A stretch of 63,231 bases of DNA, filler included, from Perkinsus chesapeaki ATCC PRA-425 (GCA_013115145.1; 5 parts of 5 records of this genome joined end to end with filler, not necessarily neighbours in it), one strand, 5' to 3'; counted from the first letter of the whole stretch, positions 31,434-55,789 are shown. Numbers and translations are program-made. Notes: a model not told the origin generated them from the letters alone.

Positions 31434-33953
31434 CTAATATCTCCACCACCAAGTCTGTCTGCGGATATCCCAAAGTTGAAGAAGACCATGAAGTGGGCCA
31501 ACTCCAGTCATAGTGATTTCAGCGTCATGAAGTCTGTTCCAAGCGACGCGTTGAATCTCCTCTGAGAGGGAAAAGTACACGACGACGAATGGTACATTTT
31601 GTGACGACTTACGAGAATCGATTTGATCCAGTCTTTCCACAAACTCAGCCGGCGACACTCTTCGACCGTATGCGAGGATCTGCCTGCCAATGTCCTCAGC
31701 AACCCCTGAAAATGGAAATTTTCGGAAAAGTTTTTGATGGCGGCAATGTTACTACCAGTGGTGTTGTCCAATCCCGAGAAGAAGTTGGTTTTAAGTTCAC
31801 GTTTGGCCTTCATAACTTCCTCTTCGGTGAGGGAATACGAGAAGCTTGTTACACCGAACATGAGGTCACCTGAAAAAGGAGAAAATCGAAACCGTCGGAA
31901 AATAGTTAACAAGATTTCCCATTGTTGTTGATGGAATTATATAACGTGTGGCACATAGGAGACGACGACAGCGAACCACCGTATACTTGCAGCAGCAGCA
32001 GCCGCAATCTCAAACGTCATCGACCAGCCGTATCGGATATGCTATTTAAAAGGAGCAACAGCCTCCCTGTCATACCAACAGCGTGCTCAACAGCAACCTC
32101 ATCAGTGGCGATATAGAAGCCGAATAGTCCTGTGTCTTTATAGGAAATGTTGAAGCCCGTATAGTAATCTGAAAATAAATTAAAAACCGCAAAGTACTAG
32201 TACAACTTACCAAAGCAACCAACATCCATTCTGGTAGCTCCTGTCTGAGTTATCCTATTGGCCGATTGCAAACCAGGGACCAGTCCTGAGATGGAAACAT
32301 TCCTCAAAATCGACTTCAACAATGACACGTTACATTTAAAGGGGTGGTGGTGGAATAACCACATCTACATACGCTCTCGAGGCCAAAAAACTTCCATAAA
32401 TTGTCCCCTCAATTTTTGGACTTGTTAATAATTTACCCCAGCTATTCGATAAAGAAGCATATAACCTTATATATACCACCGTATACTTCTCACCTTCATT
32501 CTTCTTATCATAACTTCCAATGATAGAGTTCATCAACATAAACGTCAGATGGTCAGGGCTTCTCCACGGCACACCTTCGTAGGCAATCGCCACGTGAGCT
32601 GTCGGGCCCATATCGTCATTCCTAACAAGCACCAAAAATGCGCCACGAAATTCGAGCGGGCTACTACCTGTACACCAACTCCGATGCGCAAAAATACGGT
32701 TTCTCCTCGAACATTCTCGGACCGGCTGTCGGACGCAACTTAGCAAACTTCTTTTCGGCCTGTAAAGGAAAATGTAAAACGTGAAACGCTTCGCTCCGCC
32801 CTACTTCCTTCACTATCTCGGCATGATCGACCGGACCAACAGCCACTAGGACCATACGATCGGCTGTGAAGTTGTTGTGCAGGTAGTTGGTCATATGGTC
32901 ACGATTGATGGTCGCAACATTCTCCTCCGGACCAATGACAGTTTGCCTGAGCAAATTGATACGATGAAATGTAAACTTGCGATAATGACACAATAATATT
33001 ATATTTTCAGCACTCCGTTTGCCTGAGGCTTATACTTGAGCCTCAGTTTTATTATTCACATCAAACGATAACGAAACGATAGCTGGTATAAAGTACAAAA
33101 GGGATTGGCAGGAATTCTCTTTCTTACAGTTCTTGCAAGGTTGCCTATTAAACCAATACCGAGCAAGTCTACTGCAGCAAGTTGAGCCAAATAGAGTACT
33201 ATTTACCCTAAAGAGCAATCCCTATAGCAGGCAGTGTGGACTTTGTCATAGAGGAGCTCTTCATAAGATTGATTAACAGCTTGGAGATCTTGGACGATCC
33301 TGATGCGCTCCTAAAGGCAACAACGAAGTAACCTCGGAAATATCTTTCAGTTTCACCTGTTCGATCTCATCAACGTCAAGCGCTGGATTCTGAATCACAT
33401 CAGCGATGATGTCAATGCAAGGAACTATGCCGTCCTTAGGAGTCTTGGCGTAAAACCTGTCGAGGTTGAAGCATGCATTTCATATGAAAAAAGATACCAC
33501 TTACGCCGACTGCTCTCTTCCTGTGTAAGAGTTCAAGTTGGCCCCCAAGTTCTCAACCTGCTTTTCAATTTGATCTCGAGATTTCGTCTTGCTGCCTTTA
33601 TACAGAACACGCTCAAGGAAGTGACCAGTACCTATTAACAAGTATCTTTTCGAGGTGCGAGATGCACGCTTCAACCTACCGTTCGATTCCTTAGTCTCGT
33701 ATCTTGACCCGGCGTCAACCCAAACGCCAACGGTCGCAGAATCAGAATAGGAAAACTGGGTCGCCACACGCATACCGTTGGAAAGCCTCGTCACCTACCA
33801 AAATCATAAAATGCATGCTTCAACCTAAGATACCACCTGAGTTGGGGCCACATTATGCATCTCATTAGTAATAGTAGAGCCCCAATAATAGCTCCTCTTA
33901 GCTTGAGTTATTAAACGAGATGAAGACGAAGATACGCAACGACTTGTCAACAT
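31434..33953 (-). CDS. PMPCB: M16B peptidase, MPP-beta/complex III core-1-like, with mitochondrial presequence
   Basis: MLTSRCVSSSSSRL presequence; TRLSNGMRVAT, VGVWVDAGSRYE, HFLER, NSYTGREQ, AHVAIAYEG and C-terminal IRRQTWWWRY. Confidence 0.9.
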
Positions 33954-34114
33954 TCCAAAGGCAACAGCAACCTTCAATATATCTTGAGCACACCTCCAAC
34001 TATCTCAATGTAAAAAGCGCGCGCCCAGATGATCGATTTCATGACCAGCACGCGCGACCAATTTCACAACACAAGGGATGGTGATAATCCGAAACATGTT
34101 GAGCTGAAACATTA

Positions 34115-36291
34115 TCATGCATTCCTTTGGTGAATGATATCTCGAATAGTTGGCTGTAGCCATTCTGGAAGGATCAGGTCTGGTTTGAGCTGAGCCTCGA
34201 GGCTTTCAAGGTTGGAAAGGCAACGTAGTGCCTCTGTATCGGTGAAGTACTGCAACCATCGAAGGAGTTCACGAGCACATGCCAGAGCGATTCGACGGCA
34301 GCGATCGTCAGCTTTGAGAGCAGCGAGATGACCTTCTTGTTGGTGGAGGATGAGGAGACAGTCTATTAGTGTGGACAGGGTCGGTGGGTCGCAATACCGG
34401 CAGCTGTAGAGTATATGGGAGAGCACTCTATCCAGCCAGTGCTCGACCGCTTCGCTAGGAGGGATGCGCAAACCGAACCTGATTACAACGATGAGGCGGT
34501 GATGGATTGCTGATGGCCTACTTCAGTGTTGCTACCAAATGCACAACTGGCCAGTCTACCATGGCGCGGTCCGTGCAGAATGCCGTCACTAATTCCACTA
34601 GACGATCGTTACTCAGTTGAAAGTGTGCCATTACGAAGGCCAAATCGGGCACACTGTGGCTATCCCAAGCAAGCCCATCGTGATACCCGACAACCTCCGC
34701 GAGATTGCCGAGGGCTTTCACGACAACTTGGCGGATTCGTGGGGAATCGATGAGCGCGTTGCCTTGTGCTGCCAGAGTAATGCCTTTGAGCATCCGCATT
34801 ATGGTGGCCGGTGGAACCAATGAGGTCGATTCGTGCATTTCATCCGACTCTAAGATACTCGCGGTTTTATCGAAGAGTTCCGGCCACCGACTGAAGACAT
34901 AGCCATGAGCGACCAGCTCACCCAGCCCATTAAGAAGGTGCGAGAGAGCAACATACGGCACCTGAATGACAACCCCGTCGCCTTACAAACAGCCTAAATG
35001 GTGAAGTGGTATAATGCAAAGCCACCCTCTGGAAGGTCCCTGGTTCAATCCCCGCCTACGGAATCAAATCCATCTATGCACTGATCCGCTATTAATTCAA
35101 ATAATCCTTCATTAACCAAACCAGCCTTCGCTGCCGCTGTTATGGCATAAACACTCGAGTTGTAAAAATTGCAATTTGCCATCGCCAAGTCGTTGCCAAT
35201 GCAAGACCGATACGACACCAGAATACTCTCCATCAATTCCGAGAACAACGACCCGTACCTACCACCACAATTTAGCTAATTTCCATCCTATTCGAAACTC
35301 ACTCGATACTCTCCAATTTCGCCAGTGCGTTTAAAAGTTGCACTCTTTCGGTCACCAAAATGTGAGCCGTTCTCTTCCGCATTCGTTTCATTATTCTCCC
35401 AATCAGCTCATCTCGCAATCTTATCAACTCCAGCTGGTCACAGTCATTATTCAATACCTTATTACGGTTAACACATATCGAAAGAGCATACCTATCACAA
35501 GGAGACAGGTCGACACAAAGAATTTGCACGCATGCGCACGTACATAATAGATCCAACATCTTCAACCTGGTCAAGATTCTTCTTAATAAAAATAACCAAA
35601 TCTTTCGCCAAGCCACCGTCCATGGGCCTGTGGCCGGCATGCAGCCTCGCCAATGTTCGGAATCCTTCAACCACCAAATTGACGTCTTCATAGGACCGCC
35701 AGTGACGTTTAAACTGAACAAAGCAAGTTCCAAGATACCAGCTTAGAGGGTTCGATAGTGGATGGTGTGTGATTCATGCCCGAGATGATGAATTCTATCA
35801 ACAAATATGATAATTAAAGTATGACGGGCATAACTCTAGACCTCCTAATAGGATATCTCAATGGTTCATAGACAGAACTGAACTGAACTGCCATACAACA
35901 TTTCACGGAAATATTAGGGACAGCTGCCGGTTGGAAGAACATTGGACACCGAAAAGCGAGCTTCGAGCTAAGATACTACTACCCTTTCTGTTAATTCCTC
36001 CACCTTCCCTAAATCTGCCCTCTCCCCATGGAACAGATTAGGTATCATTCTCCGCATATCTTGGAGCAGCCTCGCATCCTCCCCCCTAACCGGCGCCAAA
36101 ACCGTCCGCATTCGTCTGGAATTCGGTCCTGTAGAGTTCTCCTGATGATGACGTGCTCGACTTGAAAACCCACAATTCCGGGGACCCAACAACCGTCTTG
36201 AAGCCGGCCGAATTAGCATTGCGCAAATACAACTAGGGGAACTGCCACCACGCCCCAGGCGAAAACTCAACGAGATTCTTGCCGCTGCCAA
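34115..36291 (-). CDS. Helical-repeat (HPR-like) protein with Arg/Ser-rich organellar-type N-terminus; multi-exon
   Basis: MAAARISLSFRLGR... start; repeats ERVQLLNALAKL, VYAITAAAKAG, VALSHLLNGLGEL, TIMRMLKGITL. Confidence 0.5.
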
Positions 36292-36355
36292 TGTGCCTTT
36301 CTGCAGCAGTGTTGAAATTTAAAATGCAATTGTATCAATAAAATAACAGTACGTA

Positions 36356-38170
36356 TCAGCTCTCATCGTTCTCTCTTATGAACGGCAGCGCCTCGTTGAT
36401 GAAGACGTTGAAGATCCTATACCATCCTCCCGTTTCATTCCTCATATTTCGACCATATACCACCCGTAGAAGGAAGTCAGGGCACATAGCAAAGGCCCAT
36501 TCAGGCGCACCGTGTTGAACTGCCAGCAGATACAGCAACGCACTGGACCACAACAGAACTGCCTTTGGCGCGCGGTCATACATATGCCGTATCCTTGGCG
36601 ACACTCGCAACATAACACTGCAAAGTAGCATCACACCGACAACCCAAATAAGCCTCTTCCTCCACCACGGCGCCCATGACTCAGAGACGTACCGCCGAAG
36701 GTATCGTTCGGCAATTCCTGCGATCACCGGAAATATCTTTGGCTTCCCAAATCGATCAATTTCAACCAAAGGTCTCCTTCCTCGGTCATTCAATGTGCCC
36801 TGCTTGAAGCTAAGATTCGCGAAATCCTCGTCAAAGCGTGTAAGGATATCCATCATTTTCCCGCGCGCCTCAAATTTGGACATCCCTCGACATTTATCCC
36901 AGGCAAGCCAGGCCAACATCTCAGCTGGTTTCGTCACTGATGGATGAGTCGACGGAGCATCACCATGAAGAGCTTGCCGACATAACGCTGATACTTGCAG
37001 TCTCAACCGGGGACTCAACGACCTAATAGAAAGATTCTTTCTAGGTTGACTTCCGAGCCCCCCTGAAAACCATTAATTACCATACAAATATCTTGTATGA
37101 AAATTATGGTAGCTCCGCGTGATAAATTTCTATAAATTATACCGCGTGACGTTTCCTTTAATACTAGGTCGGTCCCTTGTTAAACAAGCACGACTTTGTA
37201 CCATCTCCAAGCCCAGTTTTGCCAGGCTACTTCGCAGACTACCCTCCTTTGCGCAGGACCTCTTCCAGTTATGTAAAAACTATTTGCACATTTATTATTT
37301 CTGAAAGTTCGCGAAAGCCCAACATAGAAAACTCCCCAGCTTTCGTAGTCATTACAACTATAACCAACCCGCCGCCCCTTGCCGCCCCCGCCGGCCAGTC
37401 CCAGCGTGCCCCCCGTACCACCTCGGATGTCGGTTCAAGCAGTCAACTGCAAGCCTTACTGCGTCCGTGTCACCATTATGGTCTTCAATAGCTAACCTAT
37501 TATTGGTTGATATCGGCTTGAGCCTGGTCGATTGGGGTAGGAATGCCTGCAGTCTGGTTGGTAACAATGATACCAGACCTTTGGTGGTTAGCAGACGGCG
37601 AAGTCGTGGGGAACAGCCCGCAAGGAACCGAGCACGCTCTATGTCATTCAAGTCGAAGAACTTTAGGGCTGAAAAGGGAGATATTAGCAACGGGGAGCAA
37701 GGTGGGAATTCGAGGAAGGAGCGGTATTAAAACGGGCAAGATATAATTCTATATATTAACAAAGGAACTTATGTACCCTACTCCCTCCACCATATCCGAC
37801 TCCATCAGATGAATAATTTTTTCTATTAAATGACGATAATATTTAATCTCGGAGACTTACAGAAGAGCCCGGCCATCATGAAGCCCATAGTGCTCCGTTT
37901 TAGGGCAGCTTCGATCAGCTCCAGCAATGTCCTTTCCGTTAACATCTCTCTTACTCTACTCGACACTCCACCACAATCGGACAGCTCCAGATAGACTCCC
38001 ATTAATAACATTATAATACCAAATAGAGACACCATCAAACATAACCAGACCATTGCCGGGACCACATAAACGACGGCCAAGATAATGCCGAGACCAGCAA
38101 GGATCGACCCGGCGAGCTCGAGGCTTCGGGGAGTAAGCCGAACCTCGGGAATGATTTCCATCCGAGTCGG
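36356..38170 (-). CDS. Membrane protein with an acyl-CoA-binding (ACBP) domain
   Basis: ALCRQALHGD...AWLAWDKCRGMSKFEA matches the ACBP pattern; hydrophobic TM stretches in ORFs 37826..38224 and 36356..37018. Linkage of the 5' exons is inferred. Confidence 0.6.
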
Positions 38171-38429
38171 AGTATTGGTTTTTAATTTATCGAGTGTTAA
38201 CAAAGTTGTACAAGTTGGGGGCATTCAAGAGGGAGAAGGGACTTGTAAGGGCTTAACAAAAGGAAAACGCTCCTTCGAAAAAAGCGGAGCGACGTTTTTG
38301 GTGGACTGGCGGAGCGAAACGATTCATGTTTACCATTTTGTAATTTGGCTTTGTGCTGCAGAGGTCGAAGCGTGCAAGATACAAAATAGGTTAGATACAG
38401 TTACATTACTATACTCTTGTTTCCACTGT

Positions 38430-39160
38430 ATGTCCTTTCCTAAACTCGTCTCACTGGTCTCGTTCCTCTTATCTATCACACTGTTCTTTAACGGTTGTGC
38501 TAGTACACGATCGAACTTCGTTCCAATAACTCCAGCTTCCCCGACTAATGGTCCCAATGGATCCACTACCGATCCCTGGGCTCCAACAACAACACCAGGA
38601 GATGATACTACTACAAGGACTACTGCAAAGCCAGGGTCTTCCTCAACAGAAACAGGGAATAGCCCTACTACGCAAACTACTACTAGTACACCAGACAGTA
38701 GGAATCTTTGTGAGATATGAAATGCACGCTTTAACCTTAGATACGCCTTATACATGTGATTCTGCTACACCAGCCATTGTTGGTACTTATGGAGGCAGTT
38801 TTAGTGGCCAGGCAAACCAAGGGATTTCGTTACAGTTTGCCCAGCCCAAGAAGATAGGCGTTATGGCCGGTAAGACTTACCAATCAAGAAATGAATTGTT
38901 TCAAAGATTCGACCATTTTATACCATACTTCCTCAGGATCCTACAATAGTGCCGCCTTCAGCTACAGTAACATATACTACGAGTTTGTTTCCGGTCAATC
39001 TTGGTTCAGCCTTCGCCCATTCGACCATTCCCAGGATCTCCTTTCTCTATTTAACCTCCAAAGCATGGAGCAAGTACGTGTATATATAAGTCATCAGTGC
39101 GAGCCTGTCCGTATCGACTTCGGCTCGACTGCTAGTGCCTCTTTAAGTAAAGAAGTATAA
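38430..39160 (+). CDS. Signal-peptide protein with Thr/Pro-rich stalk, paralog A (3 exons)
   Basis: Introns at 38698-38740 and about 38871-38935; conserved block FSYSNIYYEFVSGQSWFSLR. Confidence 0.75.
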
Positions 39161-39262
39161 TGTAATATTATTACCCACCCCCCTACCCCTCATTCGAGCT
39201 GGTGTGATGACTCTGTGAAGCTCAATTGACCAACAACCAACAACTGTACAGGATTGTGTCTC

Positions 39263-39870
39263 TTAACAGCATCTTAGTGTCCCGAGTTCGGATAAGGCGA
39301 GGAATTTACCAACTTGCTTACGGACTTTGCAACATTCCACTCGATCTCCGAAGCTCAAAGATATACTCGGAATGGCAGCCGATGGTCCGCTGCTTTTTGT
39401 AATGGTAAATAGTTGAAAGTTGTTGTTTTTAATTATGCCGTCAGCCCGAAGTGCTTTACCTACATTCAGGGGTACAGCATTGAAGAAGATACCACATACC
39501 TCTAGCAACTCACATTTTGGGAATCCAATGGGGAAAAGTGTAAGGTTATCGTGGAGGGGGAAAGATCGATGCATAATAAATACCAGCAACTGATTGGATT
39601 GAACTGATAGTCGGGTTTCGGGCTTCGGGTTTTGCTAAACACTTTTGCATAGCAAAATTTTTACTTCTATAAATAACATTTCGAAGGAGCGTGTCAGTCG
39701 TGAAAGTTGCTCGGACGTGAGAGTGACTTCCAAGTGGCATGGACGAGTAACTAGGCCTCATCGGAGATGTACCGGAAGCACAACCTGCTCGGAAAAGCAG
39801 TTGAACAGGAAATCCGAATTCGTGGACAATCAGCCTACATAAAACCTTTGTTAATCTTAGTCGTGTAAAA
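39263..39870 (-). CDS. Hypothetical protein
   Basis: Open exon 39263..39589 and upstream open frames; no family recognised. Confidence 0.3.
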
Positions 39871-40026
39871 AAGTATTATCTTTTCATCTTTGTCCAATTA
39901 ACTTGTATACCCTCTCCTCCAGTTTTTTATTCCCCTCAGTACGTTCATCCGAGTTCATCAAGTCAACCCGGTCCCCCCGCAACGTGGCGACCTCTGGCGA
40001 AATTTGGTGGCCCCCTGAATTCGGAC

Positions 40027-42634
40027 ATGCCTCCTCCCTCCACACTCGACGCCGAAGCTCTCGGTCATGCAGCCAATACCGCGGCGAGGGACAAAGTTAA
40101 ATCGACTTCGCCGTATTGGACTCAGCTTCGTGATCGAGCATTGGCGATCGCTCCTGCCATGGAGCCGAGAGACTGCGCTTTGCTCCTCAATGCATTCTCG
40201 CGAGTGCGGCTGTCTGACCAGCAGCTGTTCGATACCGTCGCGCCGGTCATCGAGGCCAAGCTCGTATATTTCACCTCGGTCCATTTGGCTATGGTTTTTA
40301 GTGCTTATGCGAAGACTGGTGTAAAAATACAGGTAGAAAAATTGGGAAAATTTCGGGAAATTTTCCGAATTTCAGGAGTCTTTCCTGAATGCTCTGTCTC
40401 ACGAGATCGCCGCTCGAGTCCATGAGTTCCACAGCCCCGTGGAGATCTGCATGCTGCTGAATGCCATGACAAAGCTTGGTGTGGTGAATTTGGATATGTT
40501 CACGAGATGGTCGAAGCACGTGCAGAGCCGAATGTCCCAAGAACCATTTCACGTCCGAGATCTATCGGTCATAGCAAGCGCTTTGGCAAGGGTAATCAAA
40601 TATCATACTGTGATGGAAGGAGGAGGAGGAGGAAATGTAATAGGAGGGTGGGGTGGCCGAGCTAGGTCGAACAGTTTTGTTATCATCGAACCGGTTCGGC
40701 GTGGTCGGTAGTAGGAGAATATTAATGAGGATCGTTGCTTTATGAGTATGTTACTGTATAGTAGCTAAGTCCCTCCTTGCGTGCCACCTGAAAACATCGA
40801 TCTTTAATTGCCGAATCCTTGGCCGCCGCCTCCGCCACCGAGTCACTACATAATCTCGCCGCACTTCTCTCTCAATGATTGCAATGCTATGGAAATCTTC
40901 CAACAATTTATCATTCGTATATATTCCCTCTCTACTCGATTCCCTCAGGAGACCATCCCCACAGAAGAGTCGTCCCTTAGTCCTTTGATCTCCACAATGG
41001 ACTTGATAGCAGGCCGTGCCCTGGCTACTTTGGGAGAGGCAACGCCGATGGAGCTGGCTCGATTGGTATTGGCTTTCACTGGTGACAGCGGGGGTGCGGT
41101 GAAACCACCGAGACAACTTCTAGAGGCGAGTTTGGAATGCGCCAGGGATAAACTCATGTTCATGGCACCTGCAGAATTGGTGATGCTACCAGACCAGATG
41201 AAACGGCTGAAAGATACTTTTTAGGTTAACGTGGCCTTTGCTTTCGGGCAAGTTCGAGAGTCCCTTACTGCTGCCTCGGATATTGCCCTCTTGGACTCAT
41301 CGATATTCGAACGCCTTCGATTTTCCGCCGTCAGCTCCGCTCCGCTATTTCTGGCATCTGAGGTTGCTGGATTGCTGCAAGTGTATTCGAGATGGCGGAT
41401 ACCATTTGGACATAGCGATCTGGCTGTGATGGTATCGAGGCTCATCACAACCGCGGAGAAATGCGAGGCTGATGTGGCTTGTAGTGCGGCGTATTGTGCA
41501 TCGATAATTGTGATGAATACGACAAAGACGAGGGAAATTGGTAGTAGTAGAGGGGGAGGGGAGGGGCGTCGGGCTGTCCATGGATCTATGCTCGAACAGA
41601 AGGTCTTTAGCCTGTCGCCTGGGACCGGGGACAAATAATAGAGATAGTCCTTGTGGTTGAGATTTTGACGGGCACTGGCGGTCACCGGGAATAAAGTAGA
41701 AAGTAAATATAACGGAGTAGATAGAACAGGTACTGAGTAATGTAGAATGGAAGACAATATAGAGAATCACACTTTTGGTTGAAATTATAACTTAAAAGTC
41801 AGCTGATTAACTGACTTTCATCGGCCAAATCTAATATAGTACAAATTATGACTAATAGGTTAATGTATAATTAAAGGCCACTAATCATCCTTGCTCTTTT
41901 CCCTCAGCGCCAAAATCTGTGATGGAGTCTCTCGGCAAGCTCCTTAACGTATATTCGGAATTGATAGTTGAGTCGATGTCCACACTAGACATCGCATCGA
42001 TTGCCAAGTTCGTGGAGGCCATGGCCAATACAGCACATGTTGACAGGAAGGTGATGGAAGCATTAGCAAGGTGATATGGTGGAATTGGAGGATAGTAGAG
42101 GAAAGAGCGGTATGAGATATACTGCCAACGGTATGTTATCGAAATACGATTCTCTCTGTAAAACTCATTTACCGTTATCTTCGCTGGGATACTAAACCCG
42201 AAATCTTCCAAGAATTTCTCGAGGACTTTTGCAATGTTTTCCAGTTGTGAGATGTCATCTCGTGCGACATATTTCTAATGCCTCTGTATTCGGTCGCTGA
42301 GATATCTGTCGTATCCATCTGCTGCGGGACGTAGGATTTAACAATTACCTTAGTAATTGGATCAGTTCTGGACTTGCTTCTGGTCACTCTTTGGACTAAT
42401 CATCGCAGCTCTTCAGCTCCAGAGGTTTCGACCTCTCAGTAAGGCCTTTGTTAGGAGTAAAAGCGTTTTCTCAGGACTTTGATGTCATCTCCAGCGAAGG
42501 TGGTGGAGCTCGGTCGTTCCAAACGAACTTGTCATCTACTCATCGAATCATTCCTGGCCCATGGCTTTGACCCGGAGGATGATCTTATGTTGATGTTGAA
42601 AGAACAAAGAGAAAACCGATCGACGGTGGGATGA
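40027..42634 (+). CDS. Helical-repeat (HPR-like) protein; multi-exon
   Basis: Repeats MEPRDCALLLNAFSRV, FTSVHLAMVFSAYAK, PMEICMLLNAMTKL, FHVRDLSVIASALAR, FLASEVAGLLQVYSR. Confidence 0.7.
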
Positions 42635-42750
42635 AAAACTTGAAAGAATATTTCCGAGAGCATGCATCCGAAATTATGTTTCAGTTTATAGACGATCTGT
42701 TGAGTGAAGTGATCGATTGAGACTTATAGGTGTTGTTGTTATTCAACCTA

Positions 42751-43375
42751 ATGAGAGTGTTTGTAGCACTTTTCTGGGCAACAGCGTCGTCGGCGTTGCT
42801 GTCGGGGATGGGTTTGATGGGCTGTTCTAATACGCGATCGAATTTCAAGCCTGTCCCGCCGGGAGGATCCACGGCAAGCCCCACTGGGCCTCAGACAACG
42901 GGTGCAGTCAGGCCTACAGGTAAAATGGAGGGGGTGGGAGTCGAACCGGAGATCTTTAGATTGATGCTGCTGCAGGAGGCCCTTTTACGTGCGACACTTC
43001 CTCACCTACCATCACGGGGACGTACTCGGGAAACTTCCAGGGCAGGTCATCCCAGGAACGTATTACCCTTCAGTTCGATTCCCAAGCTAAGAAAATAAAT
43101 TCGATGACAGGTAGTATCTTAGGTTGGAGCGTGCATTTCACACCCTCTCAGGATTCTTCGATGGCGAGCAGTTCTCCTACAGTAACATTTACTATGAATT
43201 CGTGGCCGGGCAGTCCTGGTTCAGCCTTCGTACTTTTTCCGGCACTGCAGATCTCCTGAAACTATTTAAGTTGAACAACATGGATCAAGTCCGCATCACC
43301 ATCACTCGTGCGTGCTTGCCCAGCGACATTGCTTTCGGTGACACGGCCAGTGCGCCGATCACTAAAGTGGTTTAA
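42751..43375 (+). CDS. Signal-peptide protein with Thr/Pro-rich stalk, paralog B (3 exons)
   Basis: Introns at 42920-42975 and 43111-43151; conserved block FSYSNIYYEFVAGQSWFSLR. Confidence 0.75.
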
Positions 43376-43645: not shown

Positions 43646-46600
43646 ATGGGTTGTGTTGGTATTGTACTTAGATTTGCTCAATGCATGCAGATAGAGAAGC
43701 TGGAGCTGCAAAATGAATTTGATCTATGTCGAGAAAAGTATGGCACTGCGGTTCGGGGTAATCAAACTGATTTAATTTCGGACAGATACGAGGGGGATGT
43801 TGGAAGGTTATTGGAGAAAGTCCGATCGCAGGAAGTACTGTTGGCGTCGGTGAGGACAGCAGCATCGAGCTCTGGAAGGGAGGTTGAAAGGTTGACGGCT
43901 GAAAATAGTAAACTGACGGAGAGATGCCAGGTGAGATGGAGGAGGAGGCGTGATCGATAATGACGCGGGCCGGCGGGCGGATGGGGAAGGGACTTTATGG
44001 CAAGCGTTGGGGAAATCTCACACTAGCGCGATTCTGGTTGACCTATTAACGGTAGGGGAGGCAGAGATAACAACTATACGAGATTGGTTGACTGAAGAGA
44101 TATGGACTCGACTGGCCTCTTTACTCCATTGCTCGTAGCCTTCACCGCGGCCATGATGCTGCTCATTACCGTTCATACTAGTGATGCATATTCCCTATAA
44201 GATAGTAAATGAGCCTCTTGAAACAGGACGGGAAATGAAATGCATCTCTTCGGGGTCCTTTGCAGCAGCAGTTGTTGTTGTTGATGATGATAAGCATCAT
44301 CAGCTCATCTATGAGCTGCGCGGTATAGGTTCTAGAAGGGGAAGTGAGGAGCGTTAAGGCTACCAACGAGGAGATGTCAACGGAGGTCAAAACTGTACAG
44401 GGTAAGTCTACAAGATTCCAGGAAAGAGCGGTATGAAATAGCCGTGCAGATTTACAGAGTCGATTGGAGCATCTCACGGAAAGATGCAGGGAGCTCGAGG
44501 AGGAGTGCGATTCGTTGCGATCGGCAAGGCATCATCATCAACTGCCGGCTGACCGACCAAAACCGCCACCAGAGCCCAGCAGCAGCAGCAGGTGGGCTAG
44601 GGCATGCGTGCACCACAGTTTCATACCGATTCTTTCTAGAACGACTGAAGTTGAGGAGAGGACTCTCCCGTGCTCGGTAAGAGTAGTTTTACCTTTATTT
44701 ATAAGTTAGTTATTTTATCAGGCGATCGGTGGTGCTGCTGTGGCGAGCAGTGGAGACATTGAAGAGCTAGTTGGGTTGTTGGAGAAATCGACAAGTGAAG
44801 TTGAGAGGCTTCAAGACCAAGTGGCATTGTGGCGACGACGAGGAGAGGAAGCTGAAGATGAATTGGAGAAGTTGAAGGCATCAATTGATAAGCAGCAGCA
44901 GGAGCAGGAGGAGAATTATATTGACGGTAGGTGTCGAAGGGGAGGATCGAACCAGGGACCTTTCGATGATAGAACCGCACGGACAACAGATAAATGGTTC
45001 AATTTAACTTCTCCGCTGGTGACCGTATTGAACTAGAAATATCTTCCCTACCTATAGAAAGATATGTTTCTGGTCGAATAATTGTTATCCCCGGCGGTTA
45101 CACATAGGGGACTTCGGGCCAGTTGAGGAGGGTGAAGAATCTTTTGGGAAAGGAAATGCAAGCATCAACCTGTGCAAACGGTAAAGATAGTTTTGGTCAC
45201 CAAATCGCTGGAGAGGTTCAGAGTAGTCGCTAGAAGGATTCGCAAGCCAGGATGCAGGCAATATATTTCCGGATTTCCCTCCAGCCTGCCTTGAAGCACA
45301 GTTGTGATCAGATGAGCTCTCTCATCCGAGCTTTACCACCAGCACTACACCCGAGTCGACTGGAATCTTCGCACCCGCCTCCTCCTCATCGGAAGTAGCT
45401 GTTAACGCCTCATCGAGTCTCAGAGGGTCGATGGACTCGCATACAGCAGAGCGAGCTGAAAATGAGTTATTGCATTTCCTGCTTGAAGGGGCGGTGAGCT
45501 CTCAGGAAATTGAGGCGATTCGGGAGGAGTTCTTGGCGACCGGCGGGGGGCAGCGGAAGTGGCCAGCGTCTCGGCAGAAGGAAATCGAACGATTGCAGGG
45601 CGCGCTAGAATTAGCGAAGAAAAGCGGGGAGGCTTTGAGGAAGAAGGTCGAGCAGTTGGAGATGGATTTGGCTGCTGAGAGAGCCGGAAGGGGACCGAAG
45701 GGAAGGCTGGGGATATGGACGGGAGAAGGGGTGACAACGGCGACAGTTGGAGGAGGAATGGTAAAGGTAAAAGATATGATGGAAAGAGGTAATGTTATAT
45801 TGTATTTGCCATTTCTCTTGGCTCAAGGGGGTTTACTCAGTGATAACTCAGGGGTGTCAAGGACTTCGGAGTTACTCGTTAGGAAATGAAAGTGATATTA
45901 GCTGCAATAAAGAGTATCGTACAGACAGAAGCAATGATCTTGTAGTGTTTCCGCCGCTGCGGTACTGGCACACGCGGACTGACCTTCCTCACATGTACTA
46001 GGCTCGCGTGATCGATCACAATACGAAGGATATATCGGCTACTCCATGGAAGTAGCCCTTCCAGAGCCTACCGAGCTCAGGGCTACGTAGACCGCATATG
46101 GGAATGGATGGTAGTTGTTTGATAGGAACCGATCCTGTGGGTTGGCATGCCACGCTTGAGGAGGGTTGGTGTCAGACGACTCCACGAAAAGAGGATACAG
46201 ATGATGAAGGGACGGTGTGCTCAACGGAGGATGTATCGATATTGAGGAGGGAGGTTAGGAAATGATACTCATAGGTTTTTTACGGTTTTTCTATCAGATT
46301 TGGCGATTGAAACAGGAGGCAGTTGAGTCGGCGAAATGCGCTACCAACCGGCTTCGGAGCGCCCGGGAGCAGCTTTCCAGTCGGGAAGTGGAGTTGGCTC
46401 GAGCCCAACGAGCGGAGGAGATGGCAGAGAAGAAAATCCATGAAATTGAAAAGGAACTGCGAGGAGCTCAGGAGAGGCTTCGAGACGAAATTGCAGCGAA
46501 CGAACGGCTGGAAACGAAATTGAAGTTGATGGTGGCGCAGCTGTCGTTGGCAAGAAGCGAAGTGTCTGGGTTGAGGGATGAGGTGCTGAGGAGAAAGAGG

Positions 46601-48765
46601 AGTATGGAGAGGCTTGAAGGGAAGGGGGACAAGGTGGGCATGGCTTATTATAGATTAATATAGATAAGATAGAGAAATGCATGAGAAAATTGGACGATTT
46701 AATGAACTGAGTGTGCTGTGTCAGAAAGAAGTGTGATTGAATAGGTACTCTTGGAGCTGGAATGGAAGGGTATGGAGTTGGCTGATACAGAAGGGTTACT
46801 GATGAAGATGGAGGAACAGACTGCTGGTCTGGCTGAGGATACGGAAAGATTCCTTCTAGAGTGAGGGGGGTATTGGGGTTATGATTCGATGAAAATTCGG
46901 TATGCAATTATACCGGTTTTGGGGGGGGATCTCCCCGGAATGGCCAATTGGCTTTAGGTACACGAAGGTATGCCTCAGTGAGGAGCGTGAGAGGATGATC
47001 AGCAACGACCTCCATGCCCACTTGCTACGGTTGATCGAGAATGCAGCGTCGGAAGGCAAAGAAGATCCTCATCAGCGAAGTATCTGTATAGAGCAAACAA
47101 TACAGGTCGACAGTCTGGATAGCATTCACAAAGTGAGTGGATGGTGTAGCGGTTCATACCGCTCCTTTCATTAACTGCCTTCTTTTATTGCAGGTAGCAG
47201 TGCTCGATCCACCTCGGGAGCCTCGTAGAGAGAAGCCTCTTTGCCAGCAACAGGACGTCGTGGTTTTCCAGGTCGGCTTGGATCATCTCGCTTATGGGCT
47301 CAGTTGGATACCTAGTCCAGCTGAGCACAAAAATTTTCCTGACAAAACCATTGAGGAATTCCGAGAAATTTCCTCTCGGCAGCATCACATCTTTCAGAGC
47401 CAATCAAAGCTGAGCGTCGCCGACAGCATTGATTTCGGTAGCGAGCAGATGGCTGGTTTGACCGAATACGTGGAGAAGCTTTCGGCAAAGTAAGAGCTTT
47501 CGGATTCGAAGGATGGTGTGGATCGGTCTGAAGCAGATACGCTTTGGCATGTCTGAATGAGGAGCGTGAGAGAATGCTTAGCAACGACCTTTATGGGTGT
47601 TTAATTCGTGCTGAAGAACGGCAACGAGGGCTACAGCAAACCGCTAGAGAAGTGATGGTGAAGACTGAGGAGCTGATGAGGAAAGAAGGCGTGGTGAGGG
47701 AGAGGAGGGAACTGATGAGAGAGGATCGAGAAGGGCAACTCCAAAGGCTGCTGGATGCATTGGTGGACATGCAAGCCACGAGAGAGATTGAAGAAAGAAT
47801 CACGGTTCAGCTGGGGAAGAAAATGGTGGCAGTTGGCACGCAGACGGTGAGGGTGGCGACATGGAATTCAATGGTACAAGCATCACCTCGAACAAATGAG
47901 TGTAGCATTCAAACGGTTGTTGATAAGACAAGTGTTGAATGTCAAACTATGGGGAAGGGGAAAGGTAAATCGATATCGCGGCTAACACAGACAACAACAT
48001 CTGCTGCTGAGGCTGCTGGTGGAGTTCATCCTGTGGATGTTGAGCATGAAGCGGCCATCAGAGAAGAGGCGATCAGAGAAATTAAGGCTCATATGGAAGA
48101 ACAAGTTAGAGTTACTCGCTGCAACGGACAGGTGGGAACTGTTATTTATTAAAATGGCCGACCACTGAGCTTGTTCATCTGAGGCCAATTTCGTGAACTT
48201 GAAGTCCCTCTCAGTCATCTTTTTATGCCAATAGACATTTTGTAAGGTTCGTCTTCGGGCACGAGAAGAGTCTCATCGTGCGGAGGTCGAACGGCTTGCT
48301 CGAGAACACCAACGGATGACGGCAGAGTTAGAAAGGCGCCATGCGGAGGACTTACGAGTGCAACGGTTGCGTCTGGAGCGGCAATGGCAAGTTAGACGGT
48401 CCATGGCGGAGGCATCATTGAGGAATAAGGAAGAGAGTGAGAGAAGAGTAGAGCCACCACCGACCAGCAGACGGAGGGTTATGCCACCACCGATACGAGT
48501 TGATGAGGGGGAAGTAAGTGAACAACGACAGCGGCAGGATTCGAACCTGCGCGGGCAGAGCCCAGTGGATTTCTAGTCCACCTCCTTAACCACTCGGACA
48601 CGCTGTCTTGCACAGGTGTTCTCCTTCGTATCCTCGGCAGTAGAGCAGCAGTTGTACGATGACGATCGACCAAGTCCGGACGCTATACGACGGGCAAGTG
48701 CTTCCCGAGTAGTCGAGTCTGTTAGAAGTGGCAGACGGAGAGTAGTTGAAAGAGCATTAAAATGA
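43646..48765 (+). CDS. Large coiled-coil protein; many exons, start uncertain
   Basis: Glu/Arg/Lys-rich heptad exons (44740..45036, 45431..45889, 46262..46663, 47544..48152, 48316..). The last exon after the tRNA-Ser intron is open to TGA at 48763-48765. Confidence 0.6.
48526..48607 (-). tRNA. trnS: tRNA-Ser(AGA), antisense within an intron
   Basis: GACAGCG/CGCTGTC acceptor, G73, anticodon loop CTAGAAA, long variable arm GGGCTCTGCCC. Confidence 0.95.
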
Positions 48766-51004
48766 ATTAAACATAAAAGTATATAAGTTATTTGATAACC
48801 AGTTTTATAACATTTCATAACATTTAATTATGTTTTGTTGATATTCGGGACGACTCATAAATCAACTCCCCAACTTCGATAAAAGGCAAAGTGAATTGGT
48901 CATGCCGACTTCCTGCCGCGTCGTAACTCACATCGCGTGGCAGAACTCTTCAACTCAAGGCTTGCATTACCATAAATAGCTATCTCTTCGGGAGAGTGGG
49001 AAGAGGGCGACAGTGCCGTGCAGCAATGCAGAGCAGTTGCTGGAGGCAAAGTTGCGAGCTAGGCGTCGATACCTAAACGGATGAGTCAGCCACAAGACTC
49101 CATCACTGTGACGTGCCGACTGCAGGGCCGTCAGCTAAAGGTATCAGAAAGTGTTGCTTTTTGGCGCTGCTACAGCAGGATAGTGGGTAGCCCATGTGGC
49201 TACACTGGTGGTGTTAAACCACTGCGGAGCACAACTTGTTGTGTGTAGAGTAAATAAGCGCAGTGCAGCTCGTAGAGTCTGTGCCTGCTTAGTTGTGCAT
49301 TGTGTATTTTGCGCGAATACGCCCCTGGGCGAGCGAGGTTCCTGATGGGAATCCTTCCGCAATGGAAAGTTGTGAAGGTGCGCCTTTGCAATAACTGAAG
49401 AGTCTACGGGTTTACACACTCAGGCTCATCTCAGCTTGGAGAGTCCGAGGAAATCTGACTTTCATTTTTTTTCTTTATCGGGGGGCCTGGTTTACAACTC
49501 ATAGTTGGCTGGGCCAACTTGGCTCTCTACATGGATTGTAGTGAGCACGAGTCACTAACTGGGCTCGGCTTCGGTGTTGTCACTGGCAGCCTATAGGGAG
49601 ATAATCCCAAACTTCAGAGGCTGTCTTGCCAAATAAGACATGCCGCCATCCGGCTGTCGGTCAACACCTTCGCCCTCTTCCCACTCTCCCGAAAAGATAG
49701 TGATTTATACTTAGCACAACCCTTGGCTGTCTTCTCATGGATCCTCGCTCTTCCGTAACATGTACGTAGTTGTGCAACACACCTCTAGTGCGCAACAGAC
49801 ATGCCCTCCCTGCACTTCGCTTATTTACTCTACACACAACAAGTTGTGCTGCGCATTTAAGGATGGTCAACATTGAAAGTGGTTGTTGGATAGGTCTTAC
49901 CTCTATCCTGCGTTGTCACGAAATGTTGTGTTATTAAACTCAACCGGTAATAATGCCAAATGAAAGCATCAAAGACATCATCATGTGTTCGTGAATCCAT
50001 CGGCCAAAGTATATCACTTCCATTCCATCCCTCCAATGGGCCATTGGCCACGTAACTACAATCATGCAACGGAAGCAAAAGAAACATTATGAAAGTCGTC
50101 CACTCAAAATGCCTCTTGTCAAGTGCAGCGTCCTTGTCCCAAATATCTGCCAATTTGGGCTCTTTGTGATGCTTGAATGTAATCTCTGTCTTGGGCATCT
50201 GACCGGCGCAACAATCAATAAACCACAATCATCATATACCCTATTTACAGGAACCTTCCACCGAGTCCACCAGGAGCTGCTCTCCTCATCAGGTCTGTCT
50301 GTAATGTGACAAAAATGTCCCTCACCTTTTAGTGTCGCTGGATCGACCACTACGACACGTTGGATCTAGAAAAAGCCACCAGTACTAAGCTCGAACGAAT
50401 TACCTACCGAATGTTACAATCTCACATGACCAGACAGATATTTAGCTCTGTTGCTGGTCTACAGTTGAGGCATTAATCGACGTTCTTGATTTGCAGATCA
50501 ATTGTAAGTTGATCATCGCGTTATATTACGAGTAAACGGTGGCTCAGGGAAATTCACGAAATTGCATTTAAACTATAACCCCTGACGGTTTGAAGGGCAG
50601 ATTGGACTGATGTAGCCTCGCCTTCTCGAACTACGCAAACTCACCTGTCGTCTATGCATCCTATCAGCCCTCAACGGCAACGCCCCAATCGGCTTTGTCC
50701 CCTCCGGGTCCATCCTCTCCCACTTTGCTGGCACAATCTCTGGTCTACCTTCCCTCGCCTCGGCCAACTACACCACCATGCCGATCGTCTCCTCTCTCCT
50801 TCGTACTTCCGGATGGGCTATTCTTTCGTGTGACACTTGTGCCGCTTCGTGCGACTGTTTTGTCATCAAATTCATCAGGTTTTCGATCGGATTGATCGAT
50901 ATGAACCCGGTTGGCAACCACCCGTGATGACCATCGCTCGTCATCAAAAACCAACTGTTGCCCGGAAAATTTATCATCAAAAATTATATTTTTCCTGGAA
51001 AAAA

Positions 51005-53613: not shown

Positions 53614-55258
53614 TTAGGCACTAGCAGACTTAGTGTTGATGAGGGGGGAGAAGCTCAAGGACACATAAGGATAATACTCGCTGCTACCTTCCTCCTGAAA
53701 CGCACAAGATACCAAATATCGCACTAAAAAGAGTTCCTACATCAGCGGCAGCGTTGCCAGAGCCAGTCTGCTGCTTATCGGTCTTCGCGCCCGATAAATA
53801 GTTCTTGCCGAAGAGACCGCTGCTCGAGAATACATCCATAAGCTCGGCGCGCAGCTTGACAGGCTTTGCTTGAGACTTCTTGCCAACAACAGCAATGAAG
53901 GCAGCGAAGTTCGGAGGGACGCCGAAACGTAGGACGGCCTCGACGAACGTGCGCATGGCCTTGAGATGCATCCACCCGACAAGGGTATCCGAGAAGGCAG
54001 CGGCGCAGACCCTACCGAAAAAGTAACACAAATTTGTCGAAGAATCATCTTACCTTCTGAGGAAGGTCTCCTGCTTCTTCACCTCAGTCTCCATATGGGC
54101 CTTGGCGTTTTGGAGCTCGTCATACTTGCCGGCGTCATAGGTGAAGTCACGGCAGTTGAACTTGGCATGTCTCATGTTTGTGGAGAAGTCCGGAACAGCC
54201 TCCTTGAAAAGGACGACTCTGTAAAGGCTAGCACCGTCCTTATCAACAGGGAGGTTCAATTGGATAGCCGACTGAGGAACGACCTTCTTAGCAGCGGACT
54301 CGTAAGTACTCAAAAACTCTTGATCTTGGCCGCGAGGCACAACAACAACGACAGTGGTGAGATGCTCGGTCTCAACGAAGTCACCGTCACGGACCGACTT
54401 GGGGGTAATCACATCAGTTAGGTCACGTTGGGCGTATGAACCAACATCCTGATAAATGACGGTCATCGGGCTCCTACTAATTAGCGACATGACTTGCCTT
54501 TTTGCACATCTGACTGTACTGGGTCTTCAAATCAGAGAAGGTCTGACTCTTGGCTTTAACCTCATCATCGAGCTTTTGAATGCTGGTGAGTAAGAGACTG
54601 AGATTGTCCTGAATGTTCCTGGTTCTGGGAAACTTAGCGTCATCCCAGTGGAACTTGGAGATGTACTCCTCACAAGAGAGAGATGATCTCTGGGAAACGA
54701 CCTTGAACTCGGTCTGAGGGTCAAGCTCCAAGAGCTGTCTTTCAATACGACGAAGAACGGCCTCAACCTGAACAAAGAATTGATCGATTATACTTAACAA
54801 GTCAGAAAGCTGAGCTATTTTGTATCTTACCTGAGAGTCCTGCTTGGAAAGATCGTCTACCAATCTGATAAGGGAATCGAACGAGCCAAACTTCAGGTTC
54901 TCGGGAACATCGAACCTGCCAAAAGATACTTTATAGCTTCACCATGCATCACAGACAATAAAAAGATACTCCAGAGGTTATTTCGTATACACTAGCCCGC
55001 CTAAGCTTAATACTTGACACTGCCAAAACCAGCATAACCTATCCACTGATCGACATCGTAAATACACCTAGTTCCTCTAAAGCCCTCCGAAAGGTCGATA
55101 GTCGGTGATGAGATGCCCTATTGCTACTTGTAAACAGCATCACAATACTTGTTCTTCTCACAAACTCGGGACTGTAAAACAGTGTGAATGAGCTCCTTAG
55201 GCTCGTCAGCAGAGGAGCAAGCCAAGATCAAATATGGCTGTAGCGTAGAGGAAGACAT
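53614..55258 (-). CDS. VMA5: V-type ATPase subunit C; multi-exon
   Basis: FHWDDAKFP, RDLTDVI, ETEHLTTVVVVVP, LYRVVLFK, WMHLKAMRTFVEAVLRFGVPPNF, YYPYVSL. Confidence 0.92.
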
Positions 55259-55789
55259 AACTCACTACTTGGATACACTAAACAAGGAGGAGGAGCAGGT
55301 TAAAGATACCACCACCAACCGCACTAGAAAGAAAAACCAAGCTTAAGCAGCAGCCCCAACTTAGTCTTAAAACAGCGCGCGCCCACATGATCGATAACGA
55401 AGCTCCCCTTGGTGGAGAGAGGCTAAACAGTAGAGAGAAAGAGAACTAAGCCGAAGGCTGCGCAGCGGTGAAGTGATAAATAACAGTTCTTGCAATCTTG
55501 GGGATTCTATAATAAAGATAGTTCAAGGAAAGAGAGTAGTGTCTTAGCTGGTGCTGTGGTGGGCGGCGCTGCGCTAAAGCTGCTCGTCTTTAATCCAAGC
55601 TTGGTGATCGTAAAGATATTTTTGAGGCCGGATACGATACTCTTGGACTAGTACATCTTGACGTATTAGTTTTTCACTATAAGGTAGAGATCTGTGGTTT
55701 TAAAAAACTGAGATCCGTGGAGGTCACAAATGCGACCTAAAAAGTATCTTATAGAACTCAACACACTTTAATGAGTAACAACGACAAAC

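Follow-up and report, generated by a model that had tools for sequence, protein, structure and literature searches.

The window analysed here is a 63,231-nucleotide stretch of DNA from Perkinsus chesapeaki, a member of a genus that parasitises oysters and clams, in which five parts of the genome assembly are joined end to end with filler. Our analysis covers one piece of it, the 27,007-base contig JAAPAO010000499.1 (GCA_013115145.1), whose JAAPAO series is assigned to P. chesapeaki in the literature (PMC11513098), and all positions are given in the coordinates of the whole stretch. The piece carries the gene for the mitochondrial processing peptidase beta subunit (MPP-beta, M16 family; roughly 31.4-33.95 kb, - strand), an ACBP-domain gene with an intron at about 35726-35982 (- strand), and two related genes for small secreted proteins, paralog A (38431-39157) and paralog B (42751-43372). 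The other genes are a long + strand gene region, BBS5 and the gene for V-ATPase subunit C, an exon of which was recognised through Pfam. Scattered across these genes are copies of a short repeated element, 42-43 bp long when complete, that makes up entire introns in either orientation.

The full unit consists of a left arm GTATCTT (7 bp), a 20-bp core, a spacer of 8-9 bp and a right arm AAGATAC (7 bp), the right arm being the inverse complement of the left. The core, AGGTTGAAGCRTGCATTTCA (also written AGGTTGAAGCATGCATTTCA), directly follows GTATCTT. Both full copies, at 38702-38744 and 43114-43156, measure 43 bp from arm to arm, and the one-armed copies are also consistent with a 42-43 bp unit. 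The first-pass annotation of this DNA, which was made from the sequence alone, had described the core but overlooked the inverted arms and the unit that they delimit.

Five copies across three genes of the window coincide with whole introns. MPP-beta intron 1 (33795-33836, - strand, 42 nt) holds a sense copy that reads GTG, left arm (33833-33827) and core (33826-33807) and lacks the right arm. The sense copy in intron 2 (33632-33679, - strand, 48 nt) is short of the left arm's initial 5 nt and reads GT, core, spacer and AAGATAC, with this right arm at 33648-33642, 10 nt ahead of the acceptor. Intron 3 (33457-33504, - strand, 48 nt) holds an antisense copy, the element lying on the + strand with its core at 33463-33482 and an arm at 33491-33497, so that in RNA sense the intron reads GTAAGTG-GTATCTT...GCTTCAACCT-CGACAG. 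Intron 1 of paralog A (38698-38740, + strand, 43 nt) corresponds to the full antisense copy, and its acceptor AG falls within the arm (CCTTAG/ATAC, the slash marking the splice); intron 2 of paralog B (43111-43151, + strand, 41 nt) corresponds to the full sense copy, and its acceptor AG starts the right arm (CTCAG/GATTC). As these introns are just 41-48 nt long, each is essentially one element. The sequences, coordinates and orientations that the first-pass annotation gave for the five introns all agree with the sequence. Its reading of a MITE-like repeat (miniature inverted-repeat transposable element) in both orientations is also supported, the family being dispersed and filling whole introns of 41-48 nt.

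Further copies lie away from such minimal introns. A diverged sense copy, GTAGTAGTATCTTAGCTCGAAGC, occupies the 5' end (35951-35982, - strand) of the roughly 257-nt intron of the ACBP-domain gene (35982 to about 35726), where a second GTATCTT stands 16 nt ahead of the acceptor. This copy and the others named by the first-pass annotation are real, but its list missed three more. One, with two arms, lies at 45134-45190 (- strand) in a gene on the + strand, within an intron of 385 nt (44927-45311) and off both splice sites. Another is a partial sense copy of core and right arm, AGGTCGAAGCGTGCAAGATAC, at 38362-38382 (+ strand), which belongs to the outron of paralog A and not to a cis-intron; it ends 10 nt ahead of the spliced-leader acceptor of that gene (about 38393). 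The third (34816-34862, + strand) lies antisense within an exon that codes for protein in a gene on the - strand, and is read as ...ASILESDEMHESTSL...; its leave-one-out E value is 3.6e-4 and the protein is conserved through the copy in the related records L121 and L123 described below, and it is either an exonised copy or a coincidence. In a 45-nt intron at 41180-41224 (+ strand), AAGATAC alone is left, 7 nt ahead of the acceptor, and a V-ATPase subunit C intron of about 54 nt (54916-54969, - strand, boundaries inferred from the reading frame) starts with GTATCTTTTT, has GTATCTTTTGGCAG at its 3' end and is possibly a rearranged relative of the element.

The repeat is far more frequent than chance predicts. 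A search with the 18-mer proposed by the first-pass annotation, at up to 3 mismatches, returned 5 matches against 0.03 expected. The 20-nt core at up to 4 mismatches gave 7 matches in 27 kb and 0 in 30 shuffles, and profiles built from the other six copies recovered each of the 7 with E values of 2.8e-8 to 3.6e-4. GTATCTT/AAGATAC is the most over-represented heptamer in the window besides trinucleotide-repeat words (21 occurrences, 3.2 expected). It ranks the same in the corresponding P. olseni locus (19 versus 1.8), and the P. marinus locus holds 14. The heptamer alone is noisy, at least 4 of its 12 sites in the aligned region being ordinary coding sequence. Pairs of arms also exceed expectation, with 3 against 0.29 in the window, 2 against 0.14 in P. 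olseni, 5 against 0.28 in P. marinus and 1 against 0.02 in L121. Their arm-to-arm lengths fall into two classes, one of 42-43 bp found in three species and one of 28-29 bp found in P. marinus and L121, so that the family has what defines a MITE in form, terminal inverted repeats around a unit of fixed length. One P. marinus intron opens with GT, which is followed by a perfect 14-bp arm, a 29-nt stretch that starts with AGGTTGA, the 14-bp counterpart of that arm and finally TAG. Additional copies occur in other genes of P. olseni and P. marinus. Between copies, the best pairs are 89-95% identical, but over 21-31 nt only, and two window copies have a perfect 18-mer in common; the spacers and flanks are unalignable. 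A metagenome scan with a degenerate 18-mer found 120 loci, all of them single chance matches without arms. These results confirm a non-random, dispersed repeat family that occupies whole introns.

We used RNA contigs from four runs, covering a 6-kb stretch, to examine splicing. RNA joints remove exactly 33457-33504, 33632-33679 and 38698-38740, in each case with GT..AG on the gene strand; the MPP-beta intron 2 joint was found in two runs and that of paralog A intron 1 in all four. At MPP-beta intron 1 the RNA contigs stop at 33796, with a 2-nt overlap that is consistent with the intron 33795-33836. The motif-poor neighbouring introns 33311-33356 and 38870-38936 are likewise spliced in the RNA contigs. 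Intron 43111-43151 lies outside the 6-kb stretch and is assigned from the reading frame and from homology with paralog A, with which paralog B has both intron positions and their phase in common; the exon downstream of it is 58% identical to its paralog A counterpart. Of the five in-frame exon joins previously proposed, three are therefore confirmed by RNA joints and a fourth is consistent with the RNA, whereas the fifth stands on frame and homology.

The ends of the element supply or adjoin the splice sites. Whichever orientation is transcribed, the 5' end of the RNA reads GT, 0-8 nt and then G[T/A]ATCTT. Two arrangements occur at the 3' end: the acceptor AG either lies within the far arm, as in paralogs A and B and in P. 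marinus (CCTAAG/ATAC), or lies 3-12 nt past it, as in MPP-beta intron 2 and one P. marinus intron; an arm that does not itself supply the acceptor stands 8-19 nt ahead of it. The outron copy adjoins a trans-splice site, position 38393 being the spliced-leader acceptor of the highly expressed paralog A, where the loose end of an RNA contig carries the Perkinsus spliced leader, ACCGTAGCCATCTTGGCTCA, directly upstream. The first 19 nt of the element match the Perkinsus spliced leader in 15 of 20 aligned columns, a borderline resemblance that 47 of 5000 shuffles equalled, uncorrected for several comparisons. It hints that the element could be derived from the trans-splicing machinery or have a binding partner in common with it.

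To follow the copies between species, we reached orthologous DNA via protein searches in which exons were queried singly; those with an MPP-beta exon and with a neighbouring gene each returned one or two relatives. The comparison set comprises two P. olseni records, L122 (927 nt) and L123 (22.5 kb, collinear with 30.1-51.0 kb of the window), one record of P. marinus ATCC 50983 (L125, 21.3 kb) and, as a fourth taxon, a Perkinsus-like Logan contig (L121). A global alignment was made with MAFFT in a faster mode. The window, P. olseni and L121 have their MPP-beta introns at identical positions, with intervening exons of 115, 127 and 100 nt, the 100-nt exon being comparable between the window and L121 only. 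Third codon positions, counted on MPP-beta exons 2 and 3 concatenated, are 36-42% identical between taxa, and neutral sites are therefore saturated. At this divergence the element blocks remain identical at 90 of 116 positions (78%), compared with 28 of 73 in the rest of the same introns and 105 of 437 in other introns (Fisher p 9e-25); non-element intron sequence is 24-38% identical between species.

The conservation is confined to blocks. At the start of MPP-beta intron 1, GTATCTTAGGTTGAAGC, the window agrees with P. olseni at 17/17 positions, whereas the remainder of this intron is unalignable. In P. olseni, intron 2 retains GTAGGTTGAAGC.TGCA and AAAGATAC (block identity 21/22) and intron 3 retains GTATCTTTT and TCAACCTC (18/22). 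The antisense copy in paralog A intron 1 is kept in P. chesapeaki, in both tandem genes of P. olseni and in P. marinus. L121 retains the element in MPP-beta intron 1 and has lost it from introns 2 and 3. The least conserved part of the element between species is the GCATGCAT centre, and the core tail TTTCA is common to the window copies and absent from their P. olseni orthologues. That the element blocks are conserved despite saturation makes the copies ancient, not recent, and shows that purifying selection acts on them; the constraint is a functional one of some kind.

Some copies are restricted to one species. Those found in the window only are 35951-35982, of which P. olseni lacks 14 nt, and 45134-45190, which is missing from the orthologous P. 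olseni intron of about 110 nt. P. olseni alone has copies at 7501-7543 and about 13960-14010 of L123. The counterpart of the latter is half-decayed in P. marinus and more decayed in the window, at the 41180-41224 intron, and this graded decay shows that the species difference there is decay and not gain. The first-pass annotation had proposed that the element was gained or lost independently at each site of paralogs A and B. This is not borne out by the paralogs, which carry the element in opposite orientations at homologous introns of common position and phase, with no added codons. The compared P. olseni and P. marinus loci contain no orthologue of paralog B, and a word-based protein search with paralog B as query gave no match; exact look-up of ten window open reading frames in a protein collection likewise returned 0 matches.

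Fixed length, inverted ends, occurrence in both orientations, identity of intron and element, and copies away from splice sites are together best explained by an old insertion family. Our leading reading, held tentatively and at somewhat less than an even chance, is accordingly that of an old introner- or MITE-like family, the ends of which also serve as splice signals. The family would have entered genes in an ancestor of the present Perkinsus species, the element itself being the intron. With arms that are inverse complements of each other, the element starts with GT and finishes with AAG/ATAC in both orientations. Splicing would take the GT of the arm or one lying 3-8 nt further upstream, and the acceptor would be an AG in the far arm or one 3-12 nt past it, in which case the far arm would sit at the branch-site position. 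In other eukaryotes the branch-binding region of U2 reads GUAGUAUCU, a sequence that the left arm would resemble and that would base-pair with the right one. Once the element had landed in essential genes, purifying selection would have set in on its arms and on the AGGTTGA block, presumably because splicing of the minimal introns depends on these parts, and the remainder would have drifted. The copies in the long intron, the outron and the exon are placed as expected for an inserted element. We infer both the origin by transposition and the assignment of parts to particular splice signals.

Several observations weigh against this reading. There are no near-identical full-length pairs among the copies found, and the high identity between copies expected of a recent burst is not seen. 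We found no target-site duplications at the full copies, for which the first-pass annotation had advised looking; the one candidate, a repeat of TTCGATG next to the copy in paralog B, brings in no residues that paralog A lacks. All element-bearing introns that could be compared are common to the window and P. olseni, and some also to P. marinus or L121, so that no gain event is seen. The spacing from donor to GTATCTT is variable (0, 3, 6, 7 or 8 nt), and the conserved block, at 17 nt, is longer than splice signals ordinarily are. The outron copy, which in P. olseni precedes each of the tandem A genes at 18/21 identity, fits a cis-acting signal equally well. A second, unrelated short motif family, present in MPP-beta intron 6 and upstream of paralog A, behaves alike. 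Finally, the comparison rests on a small base of about 73 kb of Perkinsus DNA from four taxa.

Many of these points would be accommodated if the repeat were instead a conserved cis-acting signal that was never mobile, an explanation that we regard as the main and a serious rival, though as the less likely of the two. It would be a platform of roughly 30-43 nt to which some sequence-specific factor binds, be it a DNA-binding protein or, on the pre-mRNA, a small RNA or splicing factor, and it would have been retained in short introns and outrons for its benefit to cis- or trans-splicing or to expression. Block-wise conservation at saturating divergence, the conserved copy directly ahead of a spliced-leader acceptor, the variable donor offset, and the lack of target-site duplications and young copies all suit such a signal, as does the alike behaviour of the second motif family. 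The window-specific core tail TTTCA looks as if it were following a lineage-specific partner, and a 16-mer, AAGATACTTTTTAGGT, is identical at 41211-41226, an inferred 3' splice site, and at 55735-55750 on the reverse strand, a guessed acceptor. However, the occurrence of both orientations relative to the transcript excludes any single RNA-level reading, and a signal at the DNA level gives no reason for intron ends to coincide with element ends or for GT...AG to arise both ways. Nor does a signal account for an arm-to-arm length that is fixed across species or for copies lying loose in a 385-nt intron and in a coding exon, and the promoter-like motifs upstream of genes here differ from the element in sequence.

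Alternatively, base-pairing of the arms in the pre-mRNA could draw the donor close to the acceptor, a mechanism suggested for the introners of Amoebophrya, a dinoflagellate in the sister lineage of the perkinsids whose introners have terminal inverted repeats of 8-20 nt (PMC7789003). The arms are inverse complements, and one P. marinus intron forms a stem of 14 bp that has the splice sites at its base (-19.3 kcal/mol, z -1.76). Yet all 8 window introns fold no better than their shuffles (z -0.63 to +1.33; -0.11 to +1.33 for the five that bear the element), nor do 5 of 6 introns of the relatives, so that 13 of 14 have z values of about -0.7 to +1.3. Most of the conserved copies have a single arm within the intron and there is no covariation between arms, and we consider a hairpin improbable as a general explanation. 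We also rejected sense-antisense pairing within one pre-mRNA: MPP-beta introns 1 and 3 contain a perfect 18-nt complement that is 7 nt long in the P. olseni orthologues, with no covariation.

A currently or recently active short element that creates or colonises introns, as the first-pass annotation had proposed, would suit the seven copies in 27 kb, two of them with a perfect shared 18-mer, and the single-species copies, but for the copies compared it is highly improbable given that P. olseni, and for some copies P. marinus and the fourth taxon, have orthologous same-site, same-orientation copies at saturated synonymous sites, and given a sole polarisable species-specific case that is decay, the lack of target-site duplications and full-length identical pairs, and a survey that scored three Perkinsus species as without introners (PMC9860276, Table S4), although the sensitivity of its pipeline to 43-bp units is not established. 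Positional conservation in orthologues is the finding that the first half of that annotation's own test had named as counting against it.

Two further candidates were set aside. GTATCTT resembles the donor of U12-type introns, /RTATCCTT at position +1, and CTTYAACC resembles the U12 branch site, TCCTTAAC, which stands 10-15 nt ahead of the acceptor. The RNA joints use a GT 0-8 nt upstream of GTATCTT, the heptamer is one C short and sits at +1 to +9, and the sense copies are without a branch-site match; moreover, a minor spliceosome is reportedly absent from alveolates (PMC7789003). A GCATGC-type regulatory site would lie in the GCATGCAT part, the least conserved between species. A search of Rfam gave no family match for the element and, in the window, reported two tRNAs and sub-threshold snoRNA noise.

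The 43-base family is real and apparently unreported. A full-text search of the Perkinsus literature for introner or intron-motif topics returned no description of it. The survey cited above covered 3,325 genomes and scored P. chesapeaki, P. olseni and P. marinus alike as without introners; an earlier survey of Perkinsus introns gave only their number and size (39-1622 bp, most <100 bp; PMC3101222). Like the introners of Micromonas, Aureococcus and other marine protists (PMC9860276; reviewed in PMC11282704), the Perkinsus family is a dispersed repeat that is itself the intron, in unrelated genes and both orientations, and it has the terminal inverted repeats seen in some of those families and splice sites carried by or adjoining the element ends. 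Unlike them, its copies are old, shared between species and under purifying selection, with no target-site duplications and no observed gain. MITEs resemble it in their terminal inverted repeats, discrete length, lack of coding capacity and occurrence in either orientation, whereas the Perkinsus unit is below their usual size range, has no target-site duplication, is concentrated in introns and has no known partner transposon. To our knowledge, the unit, at 43 bp or 28 bp in its shorter form, is several-fold shorter than any introner described.

The nearest described case is that of the inverted-repeat introners of Amoebophrya, also a myzozoan, in which short introns have inverted repeats at or near both ends and which the authors there were likewise unable to tie to a transposase (PMC7789003). 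Those introners mostly have non-canonical splice sites, with 3-5 nt direct repeats across the boundaries, and form hundreds to thousands of strain-specific families with predicted hairpins (PMC7789003). The Perkinsus family differs in its GT-AG ends, in being one main family across species and in having no general hairpin; all of its RNA junctions are GT..AG, and there are no consistent direct repeats at its boundaries.

If the reading of an old insertion family holds, the element may be the smallest self-contained 'portable intron' yet, a palindromic-ended 43-bp unit that is spliced whichever way it landed and has been under selection since before the genus diversified, an idea that we put forward as speculative and rather unlikely. 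Its ends would encode a donor one way and a branch site or acceptor the other, and a very short defined sequence would perhaps be sufficient for splicing in either orientation. P. marinus is amenable to transfection and editing (PMC8062965). The family may also offer a picture of introners long after their burst, as 43-bp units in essential genes with conserved ends and one conserved subterminal block. Known introners are recognised by their youth and near-identity. Introner bursts of old age are perhaps under-counted as a result, which would account for an identity-based survey scoring Perkinsus negative. The questions touched are the broader ones of how new spliceosomal introns originate and how small an intron-forming unit can be.

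Other short motifs recur near the element. At the 16-mer AAGATACTTTTTAGGT, the arm heptamer stands 7 nt ahead of the AG, at the would-be branch-site position. The second motif family mentioned above is a short inverted repeat between MPP-beta intron 6 (32760-32804) and the region upstream of paralog A (38308-38339), 84% identical over 32 nt with the sequence GGCGGAGCGAA.CG..TCA.GTTT.C.ATTTT. Its CGGAGCGAAGCGT portion in intron 6 is kept at 13/13 positions in intron 6 of P. olseni, and the A-like gene of P. marinus is preceded by two tandem copies of GGCGGAGCGAAGC. Two introns of the window, with starts in the intervals 34980-35056 (- strand) and 44927-45000 (+ strand), open with a sequence, GTAGG..GGAT[TC]GAACCAGGGACC, that is the reverse complement of one resembling a tRNA T-arm and acceptor; the pair is 86% complementary over 28 nt, and the same start is found in the orthologous introns of L121 (870-955) and P. 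olseni L123 (16387-16450). ARAGORN and Rfam called no tRNA at these starts, which may represent a second, tRNA-derived family at intron 5' ends. A 26-nt motif, AAAAAGCGCGCGCCCAGATGATCGAT, is 92% identical between 34012-34037 and 55370-55395, in both cases directly upstream of the start of a - strand gene (MPP-beta and V-ATPase subunit C); it also lies upstream of MPP-beta in L121 and L122, and has the look of a promoter element whose core, GCGCGC, is E2F-like.

The deposited gene tables of L124 and L123 merge neighbouring genes, joining the ACBP-domain gene to the M16 peptidase and paralog A to the long downstream gene, and the tandem gene pair that corresponds to paralog A in P. olseni is annotated as a single 261-aa protein. 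Over 33202-33632, contigs from the same RNA runs also include the MPP-beta exons in another version, which is about 10% diverged (in one case by 13 differences over 130 nt) and could be a diverged haplotype, a paralog or contamination from another strain. The gene-poor interval 48972-49855, beside a tRNA-Ser gene, contains inverted-repeat pairs of 46 nt (96%) and 44 nt (89%), in an order that does not give one simple palindrome. Within the long + strand gene, 46956-47016 and 47535-47595 form a 61-nt direct repeat of 77% identity, which suggests an internal exon duplication.

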